DNA from: Rhodosorus marinus CCMP1338
Taxonomy: Eukaryota; Plantae; Rhodophyta
Reading direction: 5' to 3'
DNA length: 64,000 bases
NCBI GenBank assembly: GCA_029953675.1
Contig: JAMWBK010000008.1
Span: 248,001-312,000 of the forward strand
Under the pieces are notes generated by a model that ran no database searches, was not told the DNA's origin, and saw only the letters and a list, made by a program, of their open reading frames with translations. A program made the translations under genes and the position numbers. Every line of letters starts with the position of its first letter. Position 1 is the stretch's first letter. Of this stretch, positions 8,501 through 26,749 are shown one piece after another.

Positions 8501-8800
8501 AACTGATGATGAGATTTTAGCATATCTCATGGAGAGCCAATGAAAGCGGTGTTACACTTCACCATGGTAGTTGGCTTTTGCATGTCTGCCAAAGTTCGGC
8601 ACAAAGGCAGCTTCATTTTCTAATCTAGTAGGATCGGAGGTCGTTAGGTCTTTTTTTCGTGCAAACCCTACATAACATAAGTGTCTTTCAAAGAGCCTAT
8701 CGACATCTCAAACATCTAAACTTGTACAAGGTCAAGCAGCATGCTGTCATGACGTAATATAGATATGAATTGAGTATCTACCGCAATTTCTCTCGTAGGC

Positions 8801-8960
8801 ACATTGTTCGCAGTCCCCTCGAAGCAACATGACGCTATTGAAAAGCTGTGGGCGGCACTCATTGAGCTACACACAAAATTTTGCTGGTAATGACATTGTT
8901 CGCAGTCCACTCAAAGCATCATGACGCTAATGAAAAGCTGTGGGCAGCACTCACTTGCCG
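8801..8960. repeat. Tandem duplication of ~68 bp with a 92-bp period
   Basis: ACATTGTTCGCAGTCC...CATGACGCTA.TGAAAAGCTGTGGGC.GCACTCA at 8801 and 8893. Confidence 0.9.
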
Positions 8961-13517: not shown

Positions 13518-15377
13518 ATGAATGGGATGAACACGTTGCCTGGATCCGAATGTGGGTTTGATGTAGAGGGCATGACTTTCGCTACCGCACAGGGTGTATC
13601 AGGTAAAATTGCAGTTTACGATGCTCAAACTGGGGATCGCCGCAGAGATTTCAGCGCTGCCGCCGTCGGTATTGGATCTCCCTTCGCGGTAGTTGTCGGT
13701 AGCACAACGCAAACGAATTCTTCAGGAAAGACGAGATCCAAGAAGAGGGCACGAAGAAAATCGTCAGACAATGTTATATCACCTGGAAAGGAGGCTCTAG
13801 TTTGTGCTGGCTACGCAGCTGGGACTGTGCAGTTGTTTTCCCTGGCGTTTTCCGAAGGGCTTGAGCTCTCAGGTCATGATAGGAAGCCTCAGACAGCTGT
13901 GAAGTCGCTAGCGCTCAATCAAGAATCCTCAGTTTTATATTCTGCGGCTTCCGACAACTCTATTTGCAGCTGGTCAACAACATCGGGTGAGATGCTCAAG
14001 AAAGATGTCAGCACAAGTGGCCAGGCTTCGTGCCTGCGTGTCTCTCCGACCGGGACGTTGCTCGCAGTAGGCGCCACAAGGTTGGTGCTGTTAGACACGA
14101 ATACATTGAAGCCTTCTCGAGTGTTCGTCGGCCACGCAAGTACTGTTACGGACATTGTTTTTGCTTCCGACGAGATTATCTATTCTGGGTGCAGCGGAGA
14201 CCGACATGTGTCCAGGTGGGAGACCACAAGCTCCAAGGAAACGTCGGTGGCTTCGTATCTCGCTTCAGCACCAACTACTAGCCTGTCAACCGATGGCAAG
14301 GACCATCTCGCTGCTCTGGGTACCGATGGCATCGTAAGCATATTCAAAGTATCAAAGGCGGGAAAACCGTACAGTACAGTACAACCGAACGTGTTGTCAG
14401 TGTCCATGCCTCGGCCCGGCTATATTGTTGTCGCTCACGGATCAAAGCTGAAGCCTCAATTTGAATCGTTTGAGGTAGAAAAAGGTTTTGTTGAGCTCGA
14501 GTACGAGCCAAGGGAGCAAACTGGTGACTTGACCGGAGAACAGTTCCGGAGCGGTAAACACATCCTCGATGCAGAACGCAGAGCGAAGGTCCTGACAACT
14601 GACGTTCTTGAAAAGAAACCAGTTCTGGAAATTAAGAAGACTGACCGTGAAGAAACTGACCAAAGCAATGGTGTGGATGACGAGGATGATGAGGATGATG
14701 AGAATGAGGGGCCCAGTATAGAGGAGAAATTGGCGCAGATCGGGGTTAAATCGGCTGGTGATACGGAGGATGACAGCCAAGACCGCTTAGGACCACTTGA
14801 ACGAGGGGGAGGCGCAGACTCAGTTGCCTATGTATTAGGCCAGGCCCTGAAAACAAAGGATGGCGTTTTGCTGGAGAAAGCTCTTTCCTCCGTACGAAAG
14901 CGTTCTGAGATTGAGTCCACTCTTGTGAAGCTCTCTGCCGACTATATTGTTCCTTTGTTGCTTGCGCTCTCCGCGAGGCTTCGATCCCGGCCTAGAAGAG
15001 CAGCGACACTCTCAGTTTGGCTGCGGGCGCTGGTGATCGAACATGCAAGTCTGCTTCGAGACTCAAGCGGTGGTGAAGTAAGTCAGGCGCTTGCGAGTTT
15101 ACACCAGAGCGTGGAAGAACGCGTACGCCTTCACCAGCGCTTTGCTGCATTGGACGGTCGTCTAGAACTTATTCTCGCGCAAGCAAAGCGGGTGGCGTCT
15201 GTGCGAGAGTCAGAGCTCGTCCAAGATCGACCAGTCCTTGAATACGTGGTCGAAGAAGAAGATGCGGAGGAGCGGGAGGATGGCGAAAGAGCTGATGCTG
15301 ATGTCGGAGACAGCGAGGAAGGGGACGAACAATTTGAAGGGCATAGTGATGAAGATGTAGATCTCGACATGGAGTGA
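13518..15377 (+). CDS. UTP5: WD40-repeat SSU processome protein UTP5/WDR43, single exon
   Basis: N-terminal WD repeats, acidic linker, Utp12/Dip2 domain (VLGQALKTKDGVLLEKAL...IESTLVKL...LSVWLRALVIEHAS...LDGRLELILAQ) and an acidic tail. Start is ATG 13518 or 13572. Confidence 0.9.
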   Translation: MNGMNTLPGSECGFDVEGMTFATAQGVSGKIAVYDAQTGDRRRDFSAAAVGIGSPFAVVVGSTTQTNSSGKTRSKKRARRKSSDNVISPGKEALVCAGYAAGTVQLFSLAFSEGLELSGHDRKPQTAVKSLALNQESSVLYSAASDNSICSWSTTSGEMLKKDVSTSGQASCLRVSPTGTLLAVGATRLVLLDTNTLKPSRVFVGHASTVTDIVFASDEIIYSGCSGDRHVSRWETTSSKETSVASYLASAPTTSLSTDGKDHLAALGTDGIVSIFKVSKAGKPYSTVQPNVLSVSMPRPGYIVVAHGSKLKPQFESFEVEKGFVELEYEPREQTGDLTGEQFRSGKHILDAERRAKVLTTDVLEKKPVLEIKKTDREETDQSNGVDDEDDEDDENEGPSIEEKLAQIGVKSAGDTEDDSQDRLGPLERGGGADSVAYVLGQALKTKDGVLLEKALSSVRKRSEIESTLVKLSADYIVPLLLALSARLRSRPRRAATLSVWLRALVIEHASLLRDSSGGEVSQALASLHQSVEERVRLHQRFAALDGRLELILAQAKRVASVRESELVQDRPVLEYVVEEEDAEEREDGERADADVGDSEEGDEQFEGHSDEDVDLDME

Positions 15378-19423: not shown

Positions 19424-22181
19424 ATGATTGTTTCACTGAGGAACCTGGTGGACTGCTGGAGCGAGGTTGTGCGCTCTAGGGAAGAAGCATCGGTAAGCGA
19501 TAATCGCCCATGGGAGCTTGAAGCGGCTGGGGGGGATCTTGGCAAATGTTCGGATGTTGAACTATGCGTGCTTTTCACTGTTCTACAGGGACCAGTGTTG
19601 CTTTTCGTCGCGCTGGATGATTGCGATGCTATTGCCACCGCAATGTCCGTGATGGCCCTCTTGAAGGCCGACCTCGTACGCTATGAGGTGGTTCCAGTTG
19701 TTGACCTTGGTCAGCTTGCAGACCGTTTCAAGGAAATGGCTAAACCCGCAGAGCCGCGCAGCGCAGTGTTCATTAATTGCGGAGCAAGGGTGTGTTGTAG
19801 AAAGAAGGAGAGCAAGTTCTGTGACATACGACAGATATCTAAGAAAAGTTTTTTTTTTCTGTTTTCTTGACGGTGCCTAGGTTGATCTCGAGAAACTTCT
19901 CAGCCTGGAAACTGTTGAAGATGAAGCGCTCAAAGTATTTGTGCTGGATTCTTGTCGCCCGTTCCACTTGAACAATATTGAGAGCACTAGAGTTCAGCTT
20001 TTCGACGACGCTCTCCAGCCCGTCGATCAATCGTCACTCCCTCTTTGTGGTTACGAGGTATGGTTGAATTGTATCTGATATCTGGCACACGGAGCGGGGC
20101 GGAATGCACTCATGTTCAGTAACGCTCATCACCACCGTTCCCGGCTTTGTAAAGGATGCATATGGGTTTGTTGAGGTGGAAATGGAAGATGAATCGGCAG
20201 GAAGCGATGTCGAAGCGGAGGATGATGTCGTTTTCGGGTCTGACATCGAGTACGAGAGCGATGCCAATGAGGTGGATGGCACTAATGGTAAGTGCGAGAG
20301 TTCATGAAAAGTGTAAAGCTCATGCGGGAAATGAGTGATTGAGATAGCAACACGGCGCGATCTCCGCAGCTAAGTACAACCTCTTGTACTGTCTCTTGTA
20401 CCCAGATCGAAGCAAAAAGCGACACTCTAGTAGGAAGAAGGAAAAGACAAAGAAAAGAGCCCGCCAGAACGTGGAGGTTGACTCGGACATGCGCCATCGG
20501 GCATATGACTACTACTCGAGGTAGGCAGTCTTCTGATGGGCCTTCTGCAAAACTGATGACTAATTTCGAGGCTCCACTCCGATGTATCTCAACAAATACC
20601 CACAACTCGAACAAAACGCAGCTGCCACGTGGCCACACCCTCGGCGCTAGTGTGCTACTTGCTTTCCATGGACCTGAAAAAGGAAAATCCCACCTTGCTA
20701 TGGTTGGCAACAGTTGGTATCGCAGACCACTTCATCTTTGGAAAGTCTACGAACGAGTCCTATGAGGAAAGCGCGTCGCTACTGAAAGGTAAAACCTGCG
20801 GGTTCCAGAACAAATTGCCTCAAAGGAAAAGGGCGGTATGGCCAAACGAAAAAGAGGCTATGGCAGACTCAATCATCACTTTTCGAACTGTGCGTCCTTG
20901 TTTTAGGGCAGCTAGAAAGATTTTACAACGAGCAGGAAGCCCAAACTGGAAGCAAGCAGTACGAAAATAATTCCCAATCGCTCAGTTCCTCTCTCGATGC
21001 CGAGGAGGTGATTCAGCACGTGGATGAACCGCGACTGGAGCTACTGCGCCATTGGAACCTGTTCGATGCTGTACTATACTCGACATATATGTGCTCAAAA
21101 CTCTCCACCTGGCGACAGACAGGTCGAAGACGCGTGTTGGAATTTCTAGCTACTCTAGGTAAGTCATTTTACAGATGAAAGACCGCCTTGCGCTTTTTTC
21201 CACCTTTCGCTCACTTTGTCAGAACGAAATCGCAACTCCTCTACGAAGGTATTCCGATCCGTGTCGCGCAGCAGAGATGGCAACACCTCTCGCGCGAAAG
21301 CCGTAACGTCCTAGAAGATCCTTCCCTGGAGACCACGCTCGGGAGGCTAGGTTTGAACGACTTTCACCGTGACGGATTTGTCAAGACGAAAGGAGGTTAC
21401 AAGGCAAGCGTTTCAGCTGTAGACGTCGTCCTGGCAGTGGCGTCGACGCTTGAAGTCGATAATCCCGAAGGTTTGGAAATAGACCCGAATAGTTTCCTCC
21501 CAGGGGGAACCCTGGATGGCGGAATCTGTATCTACCGAACTAAAAGGTAGTGTGTGGTTCTTTTTGCCACCCTCGAAGGGAGACACAACGTACCGGGCGA
21601 GAACGTTTGGGAGAGCTTGTTCTGGAAAGCCTACGACATCTTGGGCGCAGGGCTTGGCGATGTGACCTTGGAGAGGGGCATGGACCTGGCATCGAGAATG
21701 CAGATGCTACTAGTGCAGGTTGGCGGCCAGGTGATTGATCAGCGCGCATTTGTTTCCTCCGGTACATTTCGCTATGCCGTGTTGAGGGACGGACAATACC
21801 AGGAGGCAGTTCGACATCCGCTGGTAATCACACGCCTCGCTCATTTCCTCATGGATGCTCTGGAGGCCCAAGGAGAAAAGCCCAAGCCGTTCGTGATCAT
21901 TGCACCGTTGACCGAAAAGAGTAAGCCATGTCGGAGAATGCTCACGTCAAACTTGGCTGCAAAGATTTCTGTTCACTGAAGCTTCTCCGCTCAAAGGTAC
22001 ATGGCTAGCGGTTGCCGTCACTCGGGCGAGCACGTACAACGACTTTGGCCTGCGCTTTCGGACAGCTGCAGCAAAGAACGGCACAAAGATTGTCGATCAT
22101 GGCTTCTGTCCGCATATAGTGGAGGTAGCAGACGGCCAAGAAACGGAGTTTGTGCGATTTCTTCATGACGTCATGGGATAA
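19424..22181 (+). CDS. CDC45: DNA replication initiation factor CDC45, multi-exon
   Basis: VALDDCDAIA, FINCGA, VFVLDSCRPFHLNNI, LLWLATVGIADHF, PRLELLRHWNLFDA, SVSAVDVV, FWKAYDIL, FGLRFR, FVRFLHDVMG*. Confidence 0.93.
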
Positions 22182-22725: not shown

Positions 22726-23025
22726 CTATTCGTGGACCGGCTCTTCTGAAGCATGCTCTACGTGCTTCTCTGGTAAAGGGAGCTGCATGGACTCCGTCTT
22801 TGCCAGCCTCTCTCTGATGACTATCATCTCGAGCACACTAACATATCCGACAACACTCAAACCGAAGAAAATATGCCAGCCCTGCAATTGAGGCTTCTTG
22901 TGGTAATATTTGACCATCCTATCGAACGCTTGTTTGTATGTATCTTCTTTAAACAAGCTTCCCACACGCCTTCCGAGCCCTTCAAAACCGCCGCTAATTA
23001 ACTGCTCAACCGGTACCTGCACCAT
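22726..23025 (-). CDS. Probable mitochondrial ATP synthase subunit f (plant-type), ~79 aa after splicing
   Basis: YKQAFDRMVKYYHKK..WHIFFGLSVVGY|LPLPEKHVEH resembles the land-plant subunit f pattern (AVQRGLDxYHAKY..LYHVCFGGMIFSY..LPEERRHLEH), compared from memory. 60-nt GTTAGT...CAG intron at 22783-22842. Confidence 0.5.
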   Translation of the reverse strand: MVQVPVEQLISGGFEGLGRRVGSLFKEDTYKQAFDRMVKYYHKKPQLQGWHIFFGLSVVGYVSVLEMIVIRERLAKTESMQLPLPEKHVEHASEEPVHE

Positions 23026-24210
23026 CCTTCCTCAAAAAAAAAATACACAACCCCTCCACTAGCTCAACTCCAATCCAACGATTTCTTCTTCCCCGCAAGA
23101 AACCGAACGATTTCAACACACACACACAAGGATATGCGTACCTCTTTTGTAACGCCAAGCTTTTCTTACTCCTTCAAACCAAAACACATCCGGCCCCTCT
23201 CCTATGCCCTCGCGCAACCTCCCTCCCCCTTCCTCCTCCCAGTGAGCACCGATCGATTCTGCCCGATTTTTGGACCCTCCAAAAAACAGGCTCAAGAAGA
23301 TTAATCCAAAAGTTTACCAAATTATAGAAGCTGTCAAGGTCTCATTTAAGTGTCACAGGAAATCGGTTCCCTTGAAACAATTGGGCAGCAGCAGCGCTAG
23401 GCGGAAAAAACTAACCTGTACCTCAAGCAAACCTTTTTTCCCTGCTTTTCTTCAACAGCAAATCGAACCCAGACCCTAAGTCAATCACAAAAGTACCGAA
23501 ATAGACTGATCACTGATTTTACAAAATGATACATATACAAACCATTATAATGATTGATGATTCCTGCAGGCTACGGCAATCTGTGGATCATCCCACAACA
23601 ATCAATATTTCTAGTGTTATACTAGTCTTCGTAGTAATCTAATTTTGGTAGTTTCTCGGGTTTGACAGCTGTCCGCAAATTCGATTAGGGGAATCGTGAG
23701 TCGTGACCTACGACGAAGGTGGTTCTAAATTCTAGTTTATAGCGATGACGATCAGTAAATACTAGTTTCATGTTGTGGTTCGCTGTTGGGGGCATCAAAC
23801 GTAGCCTTAGTTCTAGATGCTGTTCTCTAGATTTGGTAAAGACTAGGTAATGTGGGTTTATCAAACATCGGTTTTTATTGGGGTTTGGACCATATAAACC
23901 ACAATTTCGAAACGGATCTGCATATTGGGTAAATTTTTATAGGCCTCGGATAAAAATTTCCCACAATAAAATTTAGTTGACTATATCCTTGATTTTGAGT
24001 ATCTTGTCCTATTGAAGTCTTTAATTTTGAAAGGATGTGTGCATTATCTGTCCGGACACACTTCAACCCTCCTTCTTGTTGAAACGGTCAACCGTGACCA
24101 TGCCCTCTCAACACGTAGTAGGGCATCCACACATCGCAATACATACGGTAAGACCGATATGCACATGGCATACGATGGGTGGATTCCGAATCATACCGTT
24201 GGCGCACGGT

Positions 24211-24503
24211 TGTAGCCGGACAGAACGACACCATTAGGGTCACGCTGACAACGGAGTAAGCCAGGGAGATGTCAGGCGGAGCGAGTCTAAGGGGTACCTG
24301 TAGCCAACTGCGGCACCAACAATAGAACATAGATGGCTACCAAAAATGGCACTGTGTCTAGATGAGAGATATGTAGAGGCCTAGCCTGAGGGTATAAATA
24401 GGCTAGGACGGAGTAGAATATGATAGGGCTCAGGGGGAAAAAATTCTTTGGACTTACCAAGCAACTCTTCGTGAGGGGGTTACTGAGACGAAAAGTTCCA
24501 ATA
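24211..24503 (+). repeat. Candidate 5' LTR (~290 bp)
   Basis: Begins TGTAGC, contains TATAAATA at 24393 and ends ...AAAAGTTCCA(ATA) just before a TGG-starting PBS-like motif and gag. The exact 5' boundary is uncertain. Confidence 0.6.
24393..24400 (+). promoter_or_regulatory. TATA box of the candidate LTR
   Basis: TATAAATA, flanked by the inverted repeat CCTAGCCT/AGGCTAGG. Confidence 0.55.
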
Positions 24504-24505
24504 TG

Positions 24506-24522
24506 TGGTGGATTTCCGGGGC
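24506..24522 (+). other. Putative primer-binding site (tRNA-Ala-like)
   Basis: TGGTGGATTTCCGGGGC follows the LTR end. Its complement ends ...CCCCGGAAAUCCACCA, like a tRNA 3' end. Confidence 0.5.
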
Positions 24523-24564
24523 TGAAGCCTCTGGCCCCCTCTGGAACCTGGTGTTTGAAGAAAA

Positions 24565-24914
24565 ATGGAACCCGAACCTCCTCCGGGTAGATGGATGCCC
24601 GCAGTTGCTCAGCTACTAGAGCAACAACAGCGGATGACGGAACAGCTTGTGCGAGCGTTGCAGGAGCAACAACAGCTACAACAGCAGCAAGGAGCTCGAA
24701 CGGGACGACTACCAAAGAAATCTGAGTCCCCGACTTTCGACGGAACTTCAGACGTCGAGACCTTTATAAGCGAGCTCGAGCACTTGAGGGCCGTTTATAC
24801 CCTTGAGGAGGACAGTGACTTACTCTTCATCGCGGTTCGAGGGCTTGCAAAGACCGTTACCGAATGGTACCGCACCCTCCCCGTGGCACAACGGACAACG
24901 TGGGCAGCGTTACA
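24565..24914 (+). mobile_element. Truncated Ty3/gypsy gag (retrotransposon capsid), uninterrupted up to the fold-back point
   Basis: PTFDGTSDVETFISELE...AVRGLAKTVTEWYRTLP...TTWAAL matches the PxFxG..D / WY..L..TW pattern. N-terminus is a Q-rich coiled coil. Confidence 0.8.
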
Positions 24915-25051
24915 ATTCGGTAACGGTCTTTGCAAGCTCTCGAACCGCGATGAAGAGTAAGTCACTGTCCTGCTCAAGGGTATAAACGGCCCGAGCTCGC
25001 TTATAAAGGTCTCGACGTCTGAAGTTCCGTCGAAAGTCGGGGACTCAGATT
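24719..25051. repeat. Long inverted repeat: arms 24719-24865 and 24915-25051, 49-nt spacer
   Basis: Base-by-base comparison shows only 2 substitutions and one 10-nt deletion in the second arm. Confidence 0.97.
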
Positions 25052-25088
25052 CTTCGTGAGGGGGTTACTGAGACGAAAAGTTCCAATA
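25051..25088 (+). repeat. Perfect 38-bp direct repeat of 24466-24503 (LTR 3' end)
   Basis: TCTTCGTGAGGGGGTTACTGAGACGAAAAGTTCCAATA at both positions. Confidence 0.97.
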
Positions 25089-26749
25089 ATACCGTTCCTG
25101 TTTCAAACGGAGGAAAGAGTTTGAACAGTACAAGATATCGATCATCTTCACAGTATAGTAGAGTACTTAGGCGGAACATATCGGCCTATTAGTCAGTGGA
25201 ACAATAAAGAAGGCACCGAAGTTTGGAGGATGAAACTGAGGTCAAGGAGAGGAATCCTTCGAAAATTCCAACATTTTTTAACAGAAAGGTCAGTGAGCAT
25301 GAAAATTTTCGATATGGATGAACCAGCGCTCGCTTCATGGAGATGAGGACGTGTTTCTTGGCAGTGGATAGTCTCGCGGATGGGAGTAATCGATGGAACT
25401 TTGAATCAGCTATTGATGCTCAATTGACGGATAGACTGGAATCCTTCGCTAACCATCGTGCCCGATAATCCTCCACAGCAAAAGAGTTTCTCTTATGATT
25501 GTCCCAACACCCGAAAAGAATGAGGGTTCGAGCTGGCGCCCTGTCGCGGTGATGCTCCTCCCGTAACAGGTCGTCCGCGAAATCGTTCCTTCGCTGAAAA
25601 GCGTCAAGAGGACAGTTGCAAGTATAATGTTCGGACTAATTCGGTTTTGATATTTCTACTGGCTCATTGACAGGCTTGAATTCTGTTCTCGACGCCGAAG
25701 CAATCACGTCATTGATTCACAACAAACTCGGAAAGCAAGAATAGACGCCTCTGTCTTTTTTCTGACTGGCAACACCAGCAACACGGACATCACTCAAAAC
25801 GATGGTGAATGAAGCTGAACTGCCTTTTGGGCGGGAAGGAGTGTACCACGAGAACACATGCCAAAAATATCCATTTGACGAAATAAATTCAACGCATTCG
25901 GAATGACTATTGGTGGGTGGGCACATGGACCGTAGTTCAAAAGATTGAGTCAGTCATTTTCTAGCTGGGTATTGAAAGTCCTGACCTCTGTGATGTTCTT
26001 TGAGGTGCAACTTCGGTTTCGATCAGTAGTTTCACGTCTTGCTGAGAGGATTGGCGAAAGCGCAAAGTGAAAATCACGACCTTCCAAACGGAAAACGAAC
26101 GGGATTTGCTTCGAACCCATCCATGACTCGGAGCGTGCCTACTGGAACGGACAGGTGATAAGACCACTTGCGCAGGGCAACAATGTCTCACGATGGTGCT
26201 ACCGAACGATTTGCTAGGTACTAGTCACCGGAATCTGAAGGCACGTGAATTCAAATTGAACTCTTCAGTGTTCAGCACGTGTTCCAACATTTGCAAGCTG
26301 CTGAAGCCGTGACTGTCATCCCAACGACAAGATGGAGCCGGAACAAGACCAGCAGCGAGTACGAAGCTTCAGTGCAGGGAGAGGCTCCACACTGCAAAGC
26401 TGTAAGTACCCTCACAACGGGAACGGGGATCGTAGATTTGCGTTTGCTGCCAATGAACCTGCCCAACACACGGAAGGCCATTTCGAGACTGCCTTTGGAT
26501 ATGCAACACATGGCACTCGTCTGAAGTTTTTCGGATATTTTATGAATTAGTAAGTCAATTAGAAACAGAAAGATTTTTCCTGCCTTTCTTGTTAGCCAGC
26601 GGCCGTGAAGTTCACTCTGCGCTTGCTACCCTCATCTTAAAGCGAAAACAAATTCACCCCTTGTTTTGGGAAAAACTCACCCTGCTCATATCCGCGAAAT
26701 GTTTTTGATCGGTTCACAACCATGACAGCAACCAGTTAGCCAAGGCAGG

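Follow-up and report, generated by a model that had tools for sequence, protein, structure and literature searches.

An inverted gag duplication within a rearranged LTR-retrotransposon insertion of the red alga Rhodosorus marinus: anatomy, probable origin, and possible silencing role

The long fold-back found in the window (the whole 64-kb stretch of Rhodosorus marinus CCMP1338 DNA analyzed here) belongs to a single 892-bp insertion, 24197-25088. We consider this insertion to be, more probably than not, a rearranged copy of a Ty3/gypsy-type element that was dead on arrival; the rearrangement would result from template switching, probably in reverse transcription, with the hairpin as a by-product. 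The insertion consists, in this order, of a 5′ LTR, a primer-binding site, a leader, 117 gag codons, a 137-nt inverted piece of gag, and a 38-nt LTR tip (Table 1), an anatomy in which we have high confidence. Dead retroelements with rearrangements are ordinary objects; the layout of this one is unusually suggestive, and structurally it is a possible silencer of the type of maize Mu killer, and a silencing role is possible.

The locus lies mid-way in a 2.1-Mb contig, and the host is a red alga, as the initial annotation had assumed. In GCA_029953675.1, the window corresponds to JAMWBK010000008.1:248001-312000: the protein P0009, encoded on this contig, is 100% identical to the product of 13518-15377, and the retrieved record agrees letter for letter with 3518-25377. 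The CCMP1338 genome comprises 31.2 Mb with 15% repeats; NextDenovo produced the assembly from ONT reads, Illumina data served for three rounds of polishing, and RNA-seq data exist (PMC10250338). The Illumina pairs are deposited under PRJNA778797, and the annotation holds 8,392 gene models. The insertion is intergenic, approximately 2 kb downstream of CDC45; a position inside CDC45 was considered and rejected, as the last exon of this gene already ends at 22181.

Table 1. Features of the insertion and its surroundings (coordinates in the window).
Feature	Position	Strand	Basis
99-aa gene near the insertion	22726-23025	-	annotation; its start is 1.2 kb from the insertion
Left target-site duplication, ATAC (or ATACC)	24193-24196	.	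sequence read
5′ LTR, 307 bp (CGTTGGCGCACGG...GTTCCAATA)	24197-24503	+	alignment with L001 LTR
Conserved core-promoter block with TATA box TATAAATA at 24393-24400	24390-24431	+	comparison with L001
Terminal 38 nt of LTR, copy 1 (U5 end, block "X")	24466-24503	+	repeat search
Primer-binding-site-like TGGTGGATTTCCGGGG, TGG-initiated, 2 nt past the LTR end	24506-24521	+	sequence read
gag N-terminal coding fragment, 117 codons, stop-free	24565-24915	+	ORF list, homologues
Left (original) arm, gag nt 155-301	24719-24865	+	repeat search and gapped alignment
Spacer/loop, gag sense sequence	24866-24914	+	repeat search, gapped alignment, protein alignment
Right arm, inverted copy of 24719-24865	24915-25051	-	gapped alignment
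Terminal 38 nt of LTR, copy 2, all there is of the 3′ LTR	25051-25088	+	repeat search
Right target-site duplication, ATAC (or ATACC)	25089-25092	.	gapped alignment
First AATAAA 3′ of the element, possible poly(A) signal (weak, inferred)	25203-25208	+	sequence scan

Ends, LTR, and primer-binding site

The LTR of L001, a transcript contig from a sister strain, aligns to 24197-24503 (TGTTGGTGCACGC...CTTCAACA in L001), with an overall identity of 55%. Conservation is concentrated in three islands: the 16 nt at the start, 42 nt surrounding TATAAATA, and CTCTTCGTGAGGGGGTTACT near the end. In sliding windows, the TATA block retains 28/30 and 26/30 identical positions, against 55% for the whole LTR, and is the part of the LTR most conserved with respect to this transcribed relative. 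The TATA-containing sequence that had initially been called LTR-like is a real 5′ LTR. Its 3′ end, CCAATA, is backed by four contexts in which similarity ends at precisely this point, two in the window and two in another sister-strain contig, L020. The flanks of the insertion, when compared with the LTR, show no LTR similarity, and their interpretation as degenerate LTRs was rejected, the scores being no better than those of shuffles. The LTR termini are CG (or GT)...TA, a non-canonical form that speaks against the element model, the canonical TG...CA being present in L001.

Directly outside both predicted ends stands ATAC(CGTT), the LTR start having been placed independently, via the L001 alignment. 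The flanking repeat reaches 8 nt (ATACCGTT, at 24193-24200 and 25089-25096) and overlaps the first bases of the LTR. We read it as a 4-5-bp target-site duplication, within the range of 4-6 bp; since the flanking match extends to 8 nt, the exact boundary of the element is uncertain by 1-4 nt. The complement of TGGTGGATTTCCGGGG, CCCCGGAAATCCACCA, has the form T-stem/acceptor/discriminator/CCA, as a primer-binding site should; a tRNA scan of the 64-kb window yielded no tRNA gene, hence none matching TGGTGGATTTCCGGGG.

At the other end, the repeat search revealed a perfect direct repeat (24466-24503 and 25051-25088, 38/38) that had escaped the initial annotation. The second copy of this LTR tip has the same orientation as the 5′ LTR and is fused straight to the right arm of the fold-back. 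The sequence and the repeat search show no PPT, pol, or 3′ U3-R within 24197-25088, so the copy can neither transpose again nor be reverse-transcribed by the normal route.

The fold-back and its gag sequence

The repeat search yields two inverted pairs, 24788-24873/24907-24992 (95%) and 24719-24781/24989-25051 (98%), which the gapped alignment merges into one fold-back with arms of 147 and 137 nt and a spacer of 49 nt; no second inverted repeat of at least 60 nt was found by this search anywhere in the 64-kb window. The left-arm segment 24719-24777 is identical to 25051-24993 of the right arm (59/59); the next ten nucleotides of the left arm, 24778-24787, are missing from the right one; and 24788-24865 differs from 24992-24915 at two positions, with G at 24808 against C at 24972 and G at 24842 against A at 24938. 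Thus, the 10-nt gap aside, 135 of the 137 aligned positions are identical (~98.5%). The initial annotation had given the arms, the spacer, the two substitutions, and the single 10-nt deletion exactly as they emerge from this alignment.

All three differences, that is, C at 24972, A at 24938, and the 10-nt deletion (which sits between two GAG triplets), are borne by the right arm, while the left arm retains E82, G93, and the reading frame, as seen in the homologues by the gapped and protein alignments. Judging from these alignments, all three are derived on the copied arm.

The RNA of 24690-25100 folds at -307.4 kcal/mol, compared with -129.5 +/- 6.2 kcal/mol for shuffles (z = -28.5), and the stem is still present when the whole predicted transcript, 24425-25225, is folded. 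The early expectation that a transcript would form a long double-stranded stem is borne out in both folds: any RNA made from the LTR promoter would have to form this structure, with a stem of ~137 bp and a longest perfect run of 59 bp. In repeats, alignment, and folds alike, the locus is an inverted duplication able to make long dsRNA, as a hairpin silencer should be. In Rfam, the best match, MIR868, reaches 46.8 bits where the threshold is 200, and is of a generic long-hairpin kind.

The coding fragment was initially described as an uninterrupted piece of gag, and this holds: the ORF 24565-24960 is open, and its identity is given by the homologues P0001-P0004 and P0013 from Rhodosorus marinus transcriptomes. 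The ORF encodes 131 aa, of which 117 codons are gag and 14 run into the inverted arm (stop at 24958-24960). It is about 52-86% identical to R. marinus gag proteins: 53% over the full length for P0001, and 71-86% over parts for P0002, P0003, and P0004. In the protein alignment, the window copy runs alongside its relatives as far as ...TWAALQ (24915), where it folds back and they read on into NALRARF. The duplicated piece was said to be the last 147 bp of the gag fragment; its coordinates are correct, but "last" is not, because true gag codons extend across the spacer as far as 24915.

Homology to the capsid comes via the relatives, P0002 and P0013 carrying the Pfam domains Retrotrans_gag/Ty3_capsid (PF03732/PF19259). 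The gag fragment ends where the Retrotrans_gag capsid domain begins, and the 131-aa ORF itself, being too short, has no Pfam match. Neither this ORF nor its two neighboring ORFs have an exact protein on record, and the gene models differ. The contig L001 contains gag, Integrase_H2C2, rve (integrase core), and an LTR in the order typical of Ty3/gypsy. The window copy has no pol and thus does not show the RT-RH-IN order, so that the Ty3/gypsy (Metaviridae) label rests on the relatives.

A sequence search found no further piece of this retrotransposon family in the 64-kb window, and a profile search with the gag alignment retrieved no protein of the family from the CCMP1338 annotation. Related gag/LTR transcripts are present in the sister strain, and match the window copy exactly over at most 11-14 nt in the arm and 21 nt in the LTR. 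These transcripts come from a clearly different strain, since the MMETSP0011 "R. marinus" orthologue of one housekeeping protein is only 89% identical. In a metagenome collection (not containing the MMETSP contigs), a protein-pattern scan gave zero matches, and a scan with LTR 17-mers gave 15 chance matches, none of them similar to the window.

Origin of the rearrangement

Both internal junctions carry microhomology. At the turn-around, 24907-24915 (GCGTTACAA) pairs at 7/9 positions with 24866-24874; at the second junction, between the right arm and the LTR tip, CTT/TCTT is common to both sides (3-4 nt). We infer that the copy was made by two microhomology-guided template switches, which most likely occurred before integration. 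That they occurred during reverse transcription we consider an evenly balanced proposition, and its proposed timing and mechanism are as follows. A short tRNA-primed minus-strand DNA over the U5 tip would be transferred to a wrong template and would copy there 147 nt of antisense-polarity gag, the template being either the minus-strand DNA of a co-packaged genome or an antisense RNA. The nascent strand would then switch back to RNA and reach the primer-binding site, and ordinary plus-strand transfer would complete the left LTR; both integrase-competent ends would thereby be kept.

The right junction is situated 38 nt from the LTR tip and falls in the R-U5 stretch, which is synthesized first; this favors the reverse-transcription route. 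In the sister-strain contig L020, two other rearranged LTR pieces (one of them an isolated 40-nt tip, at 2798-2839, the other an LTR cut short at ...CTCTTCGT) break within ~7 nt of the same LTR position. Because of the junction within R-U5 and the L020 breakpoints near the same position, the pre-integration route is favored over a post-integration one. The shared breakpoint position may mark an RNA end. This is speculation, as the L020 contig was built by Trinity and its breakpoints could be assembly effects.

Retroviral strand-transfer errors are known to produce deletion or "deletion with insertion" variants whose LTR tips are correct and whose internal junctions lie in short homologies. The R. 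marinus copy resembles them in its proper LTR tips and in junctions at short homologies, as expected for mis-directed transfer of nascent DNA. It differs in adding an inverted gag copy, and its link to that mechanism is putative; a product that has an inverted 147-nt gag copy and has lost all pol along with the bulk of the 3′ LTR is, to our knowledge, not among the standard described outcomes.

Some simpler routes were considered and rejected: autointegration, as the LTR tip adjoins host DNA at its outer end and gag at its inner one; and self snap-back of the minus or plus strand alone, as the segment order does not fit.

Several observations speak against the reverse-transcription model. It needs a 147-nt template of antisense polarity, which is purely putative. 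Two substitutions per 137 nt is a high number for reverse-transcriptase error, unless the template was another copy. Finally, fold-back repair after integration, followed by deletion, gives the same microhomologies and retains the duplication.

The latter possibility, that the rearrangement happened after integration, is the strongest rival, although we see it as the less probable origin. It posits a break in the gag of a full-length element and fold-back priming on the 7/9-nt inverted microhomology, after which microhomology joining removes the rest of the element except its last 38 nt; in a variant, an antisense nested copy is followed by two deletions. The microhomology at both junctions and the retained target-site duplication agree with this scenario, as does the placement of all three differences on the newly made arm, which error-prone repair synthesis predicts; moreover, illegitimate deletions within LTR elements are frequent. 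However, a random breakpoint would have to fall in the last 38 nt of a several-kb element, sparing the tip and the flank, with a chance of ~1%, and the two L020 LTR fragments breaking at the same LTR position would be left unexplained.

By its tips (38/38), arms (~98.5%), and open gag frame, the copy looks young. The initial annotation took the near-identical arms to imply a recent origin or maintenance. The first alternative fits a young copy; nothing points to selection, and the near-identical arms, the identical tips, and the open frame are no argument for maintenance, because a young neutral copy shows the same.

Silencing potential, comparison with known systems, and meaning

Genes for Dicer-like proteins and Argonaute (DCL/AGO) were lost in Cyanidiophyceae (PMC9812998); the loss is placed on the branch of Cyanidiophyceae, which implies that the red algal ancestor had these genes. 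Mesophilic red algae are reported to keep them (PMC9812998, PMC12026948), and they are present in Asparagopsis (PMC12026948). We found no literature on DCL/AGO in R. marinus, and no papers on Rhodosorus combined with retrotransposon or Argonaute. If the alga has RNAi, the hairpin would be a substrate for Dicer. The transcription of the locus and any small RNA from it are predictions; formation of the hairpin RNA in vivo is possible but somewhat doubtful, and measurable silencing of the family by the locus is unlikely.

The initial annotation proposed a Mu-killer-like locus. The layout conforms to this proposal (an LTR, a primer-binding site, the start of gag, and a 137-bp fold-back on one strand), while nothing indicates selective maintenance. 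In the strong form, the locus would be a functional silencer, its LTR-driven hairpin being processed by Dicer into siRNAs that silence active members of the family in trans, and selection may keep it in place. The promoter, stem, and strand arrangement are all there; the TATA block is the best conserved within the LTR; transcripts of related elements exist in sister strains; DCL/AGO have been reported from red algae other than Cyanidiophyceae; and hairpins derived from TEs are an accepted silencing trigger (PMC3440606, PMC11624286, PMC2725412). Nevertheless, we regard such a function as improbable: there is no second copy within 64 kb; the recorded proteins of the CCMP1338 genome include no gag of this family; the nearest known transcripts match the arm exactly over at most 14 nt; youth alone accounts for the near-identical arms; and the truncated 3′ end comes without the element's own poly(A) region.

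That the fold-back is an assembly or chimeric-read artefact of Nanopore assembly is highly improbable. Fold-back chimeric reads do occur on the ONT platform, which was used here together with NextDenovo, and the record L019, stemming from the same assembly, offers no independent check. But the arms are set apart by two substitutions as well as a 10-nt gap, and the right arm ends in a precise LTR-tip junction followed by the target-site duplication and unique flank, which makes an artefact unlikely; the position mid-way in the 2.1-Mb contig and the three rounds of Illumina polishing (PMC10250338) also speak against it. Weaker still is a protein route, with the 131-aa ORF acting as a truncated Gag that disturbs the assembly of particles, in the manner of the truncated Gag restriction factors of yeast and mammals: the ORF is intact, ATG-initiated, placed behind the LTR promoter, and conserved at the N-terminus with its relatives, but the fragment extends no further than the beginning of the Retrotrans_gag capsid domain and has no Pfam match, codons 52-131 lie within the stem, which should hinder translation, and there is no sign of conservation.

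In maize, Mu killer (Muk) arose spontaneously when part of a transposon was duplicated in inverted orientation, and its long-hairpin transcript silences in trans (PMC3440606, PMC2725412). The R. marinus locus is similar in being a partial inverted duplication whose transcript would be a hairpin of element sequence, in principle silencing intact copies in trans. The two differ in that Muk derives from a DNA transposon (mudrA plus TIRA), and the algal locus from an LTR retrotransposon; that the Muk hairpin is ~4 kb and is proposed to arise by read-through from a flanking gene, whereas the R. marinus stem is 137 bp of gag with its own LTR promoter; and that silencing and small RNAs have been demonstrated for Muk, whereas for the R. 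marinus locus they are at most predicted.

Inverted LTR-retrotransposon sequences transcribed from an LTR have been discussed as silencing triggers, as proposed, e.g., for EVD of Arabidopsis (PMC11624286). The likeness here is retrotransposon sequence in inverted orientation with an LTR as promoter; however, the EVD type involves two insertions (nested or tandem antisense) with LTRs kilobases apart, and the R. marinus locus is a single insertion with one duplication and an internal gag fold-back. Rearranged endogenous pararetroviruses, defective reverse-transcribing elements, have been proposed to give heritable RNA-based immunity (PMC9868043); these are a different class of elements, found in plants, and the likeness is in being rearranged, defective, and reverse-transcribing.

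A more far-reaching interpretation, to which we give little credence, is that, among the red-algal Ty3/gypsy elements of this group, errors of reverse transcription may again and again generate hairpin "vaccines" under LTR control, against the family itself and by way of RNAi; the breakpoint at the start of the 38-nt LTR tip, common to three independent rearranged pieces, would then be the RNA end where the mis-transfer takes place, and the resulting mini-copies may be integration-competent, with an intact LTR promoter and an inverted piece of gag. For CCMP1338, the data required for testing the locus are already available (RNA-seq, reads from ONT and Illumina, and a 31-Mb assembly). If transcribed and diced, the locus would be, among the literature found, the first natural transposon-derived hairpin silencer in a red alga, and a case of a retrotransposon whose own replication error gives rise to its silencer in a single step. 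Even without any function, it preserves a double template switch in clean and datable form, with both integrase ends intact, and informs the origin of defective LTR copies.

Inverted and rearranged TE pieces in sister-strain transcripts

The Trinity contig L020, a transcript of the sister strain, was obtained from an R. marinus transcriptome (JGI 3300016967), the sample that also supplied the transcript contigs L001, a related transcript that carries gag, integrase and LTR, and L003. Several TE pieces are nested within this single contig (L020:1130-3110; see table). The inverted LTR repeats in L020 are 42-59 nt long and 78-88% complementary; hence, the sister strain has transcripts with inverted TE pieces. 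Three independent breakpoints, two in L020 and one at window position 25051, where the right inverted gag arm is joined to the 38-nt LTR tip, fall within ~7 nt of one LTR position.

In another sister-strain transcript, L002, the order of TE pieces is scrambled over positions 400-1410; this contig is a Trinity chimera or else stems from a copy that is itself rearranged.

TE pieces in the sister-strain transcripts L020 and L002
Piece	Contig	Position	Strand
Truncated LTR, ends ...CTCTTCGT	L020	1327	
Inverted LTR	L020	2272 to ~2490	
Orphan LTR tip, 40 nt	L020	2798-2839	
Gag piece	L002	first in 400-1410	+
Gag N-terminal piece, out of order	L002	after the + strand gag piece	
Integrase zinc-finger region	L002	775-1059	-
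Integrase C-terminal region	L002	after the zinc-finger region	+

Insertion ends and the gag N-terminus

Similarity between the ends of the insertion reaches past the target-site duplication (window 24184-24200 vs. 25081-25096), the upstream TTCCGAATCATACCGTT and the right-end TTCCAATAATACCGTT sharing 14 of 16 positions with one gap. The target site thus resembles the LTR tip, which could be due to chance, to a target preference, or to homology-assisted capture.

The N-terminus of gag contains a glutamine-rich CAG/CAA tract (window 24625-24690, L001:136-266). The tract is far longer in L001, where the repeats have a 12-nt periodicity, than in the window copy, and hence is variable among copies.

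Other window features and strain divergence

At window positions 8785-8953, a 77-nt unit is present in two tandem-like copies, 86% identical and 92 nt apart. The plus strand is strongly C-rich at 22800-23400 (GC skew as low as -0.46), directly upstream of the start of a minus-strand gene encoding 99 amino acids; this stretch may be the 5' UTR or promoter of the gene.

The WDR43/Utp-like protein of CCMP1338 (window 13518-15377) is only 89% identical to its comparator P0005 from 'R. marinus' MMETSP0011; strains named R. marinus are strongly diverged.
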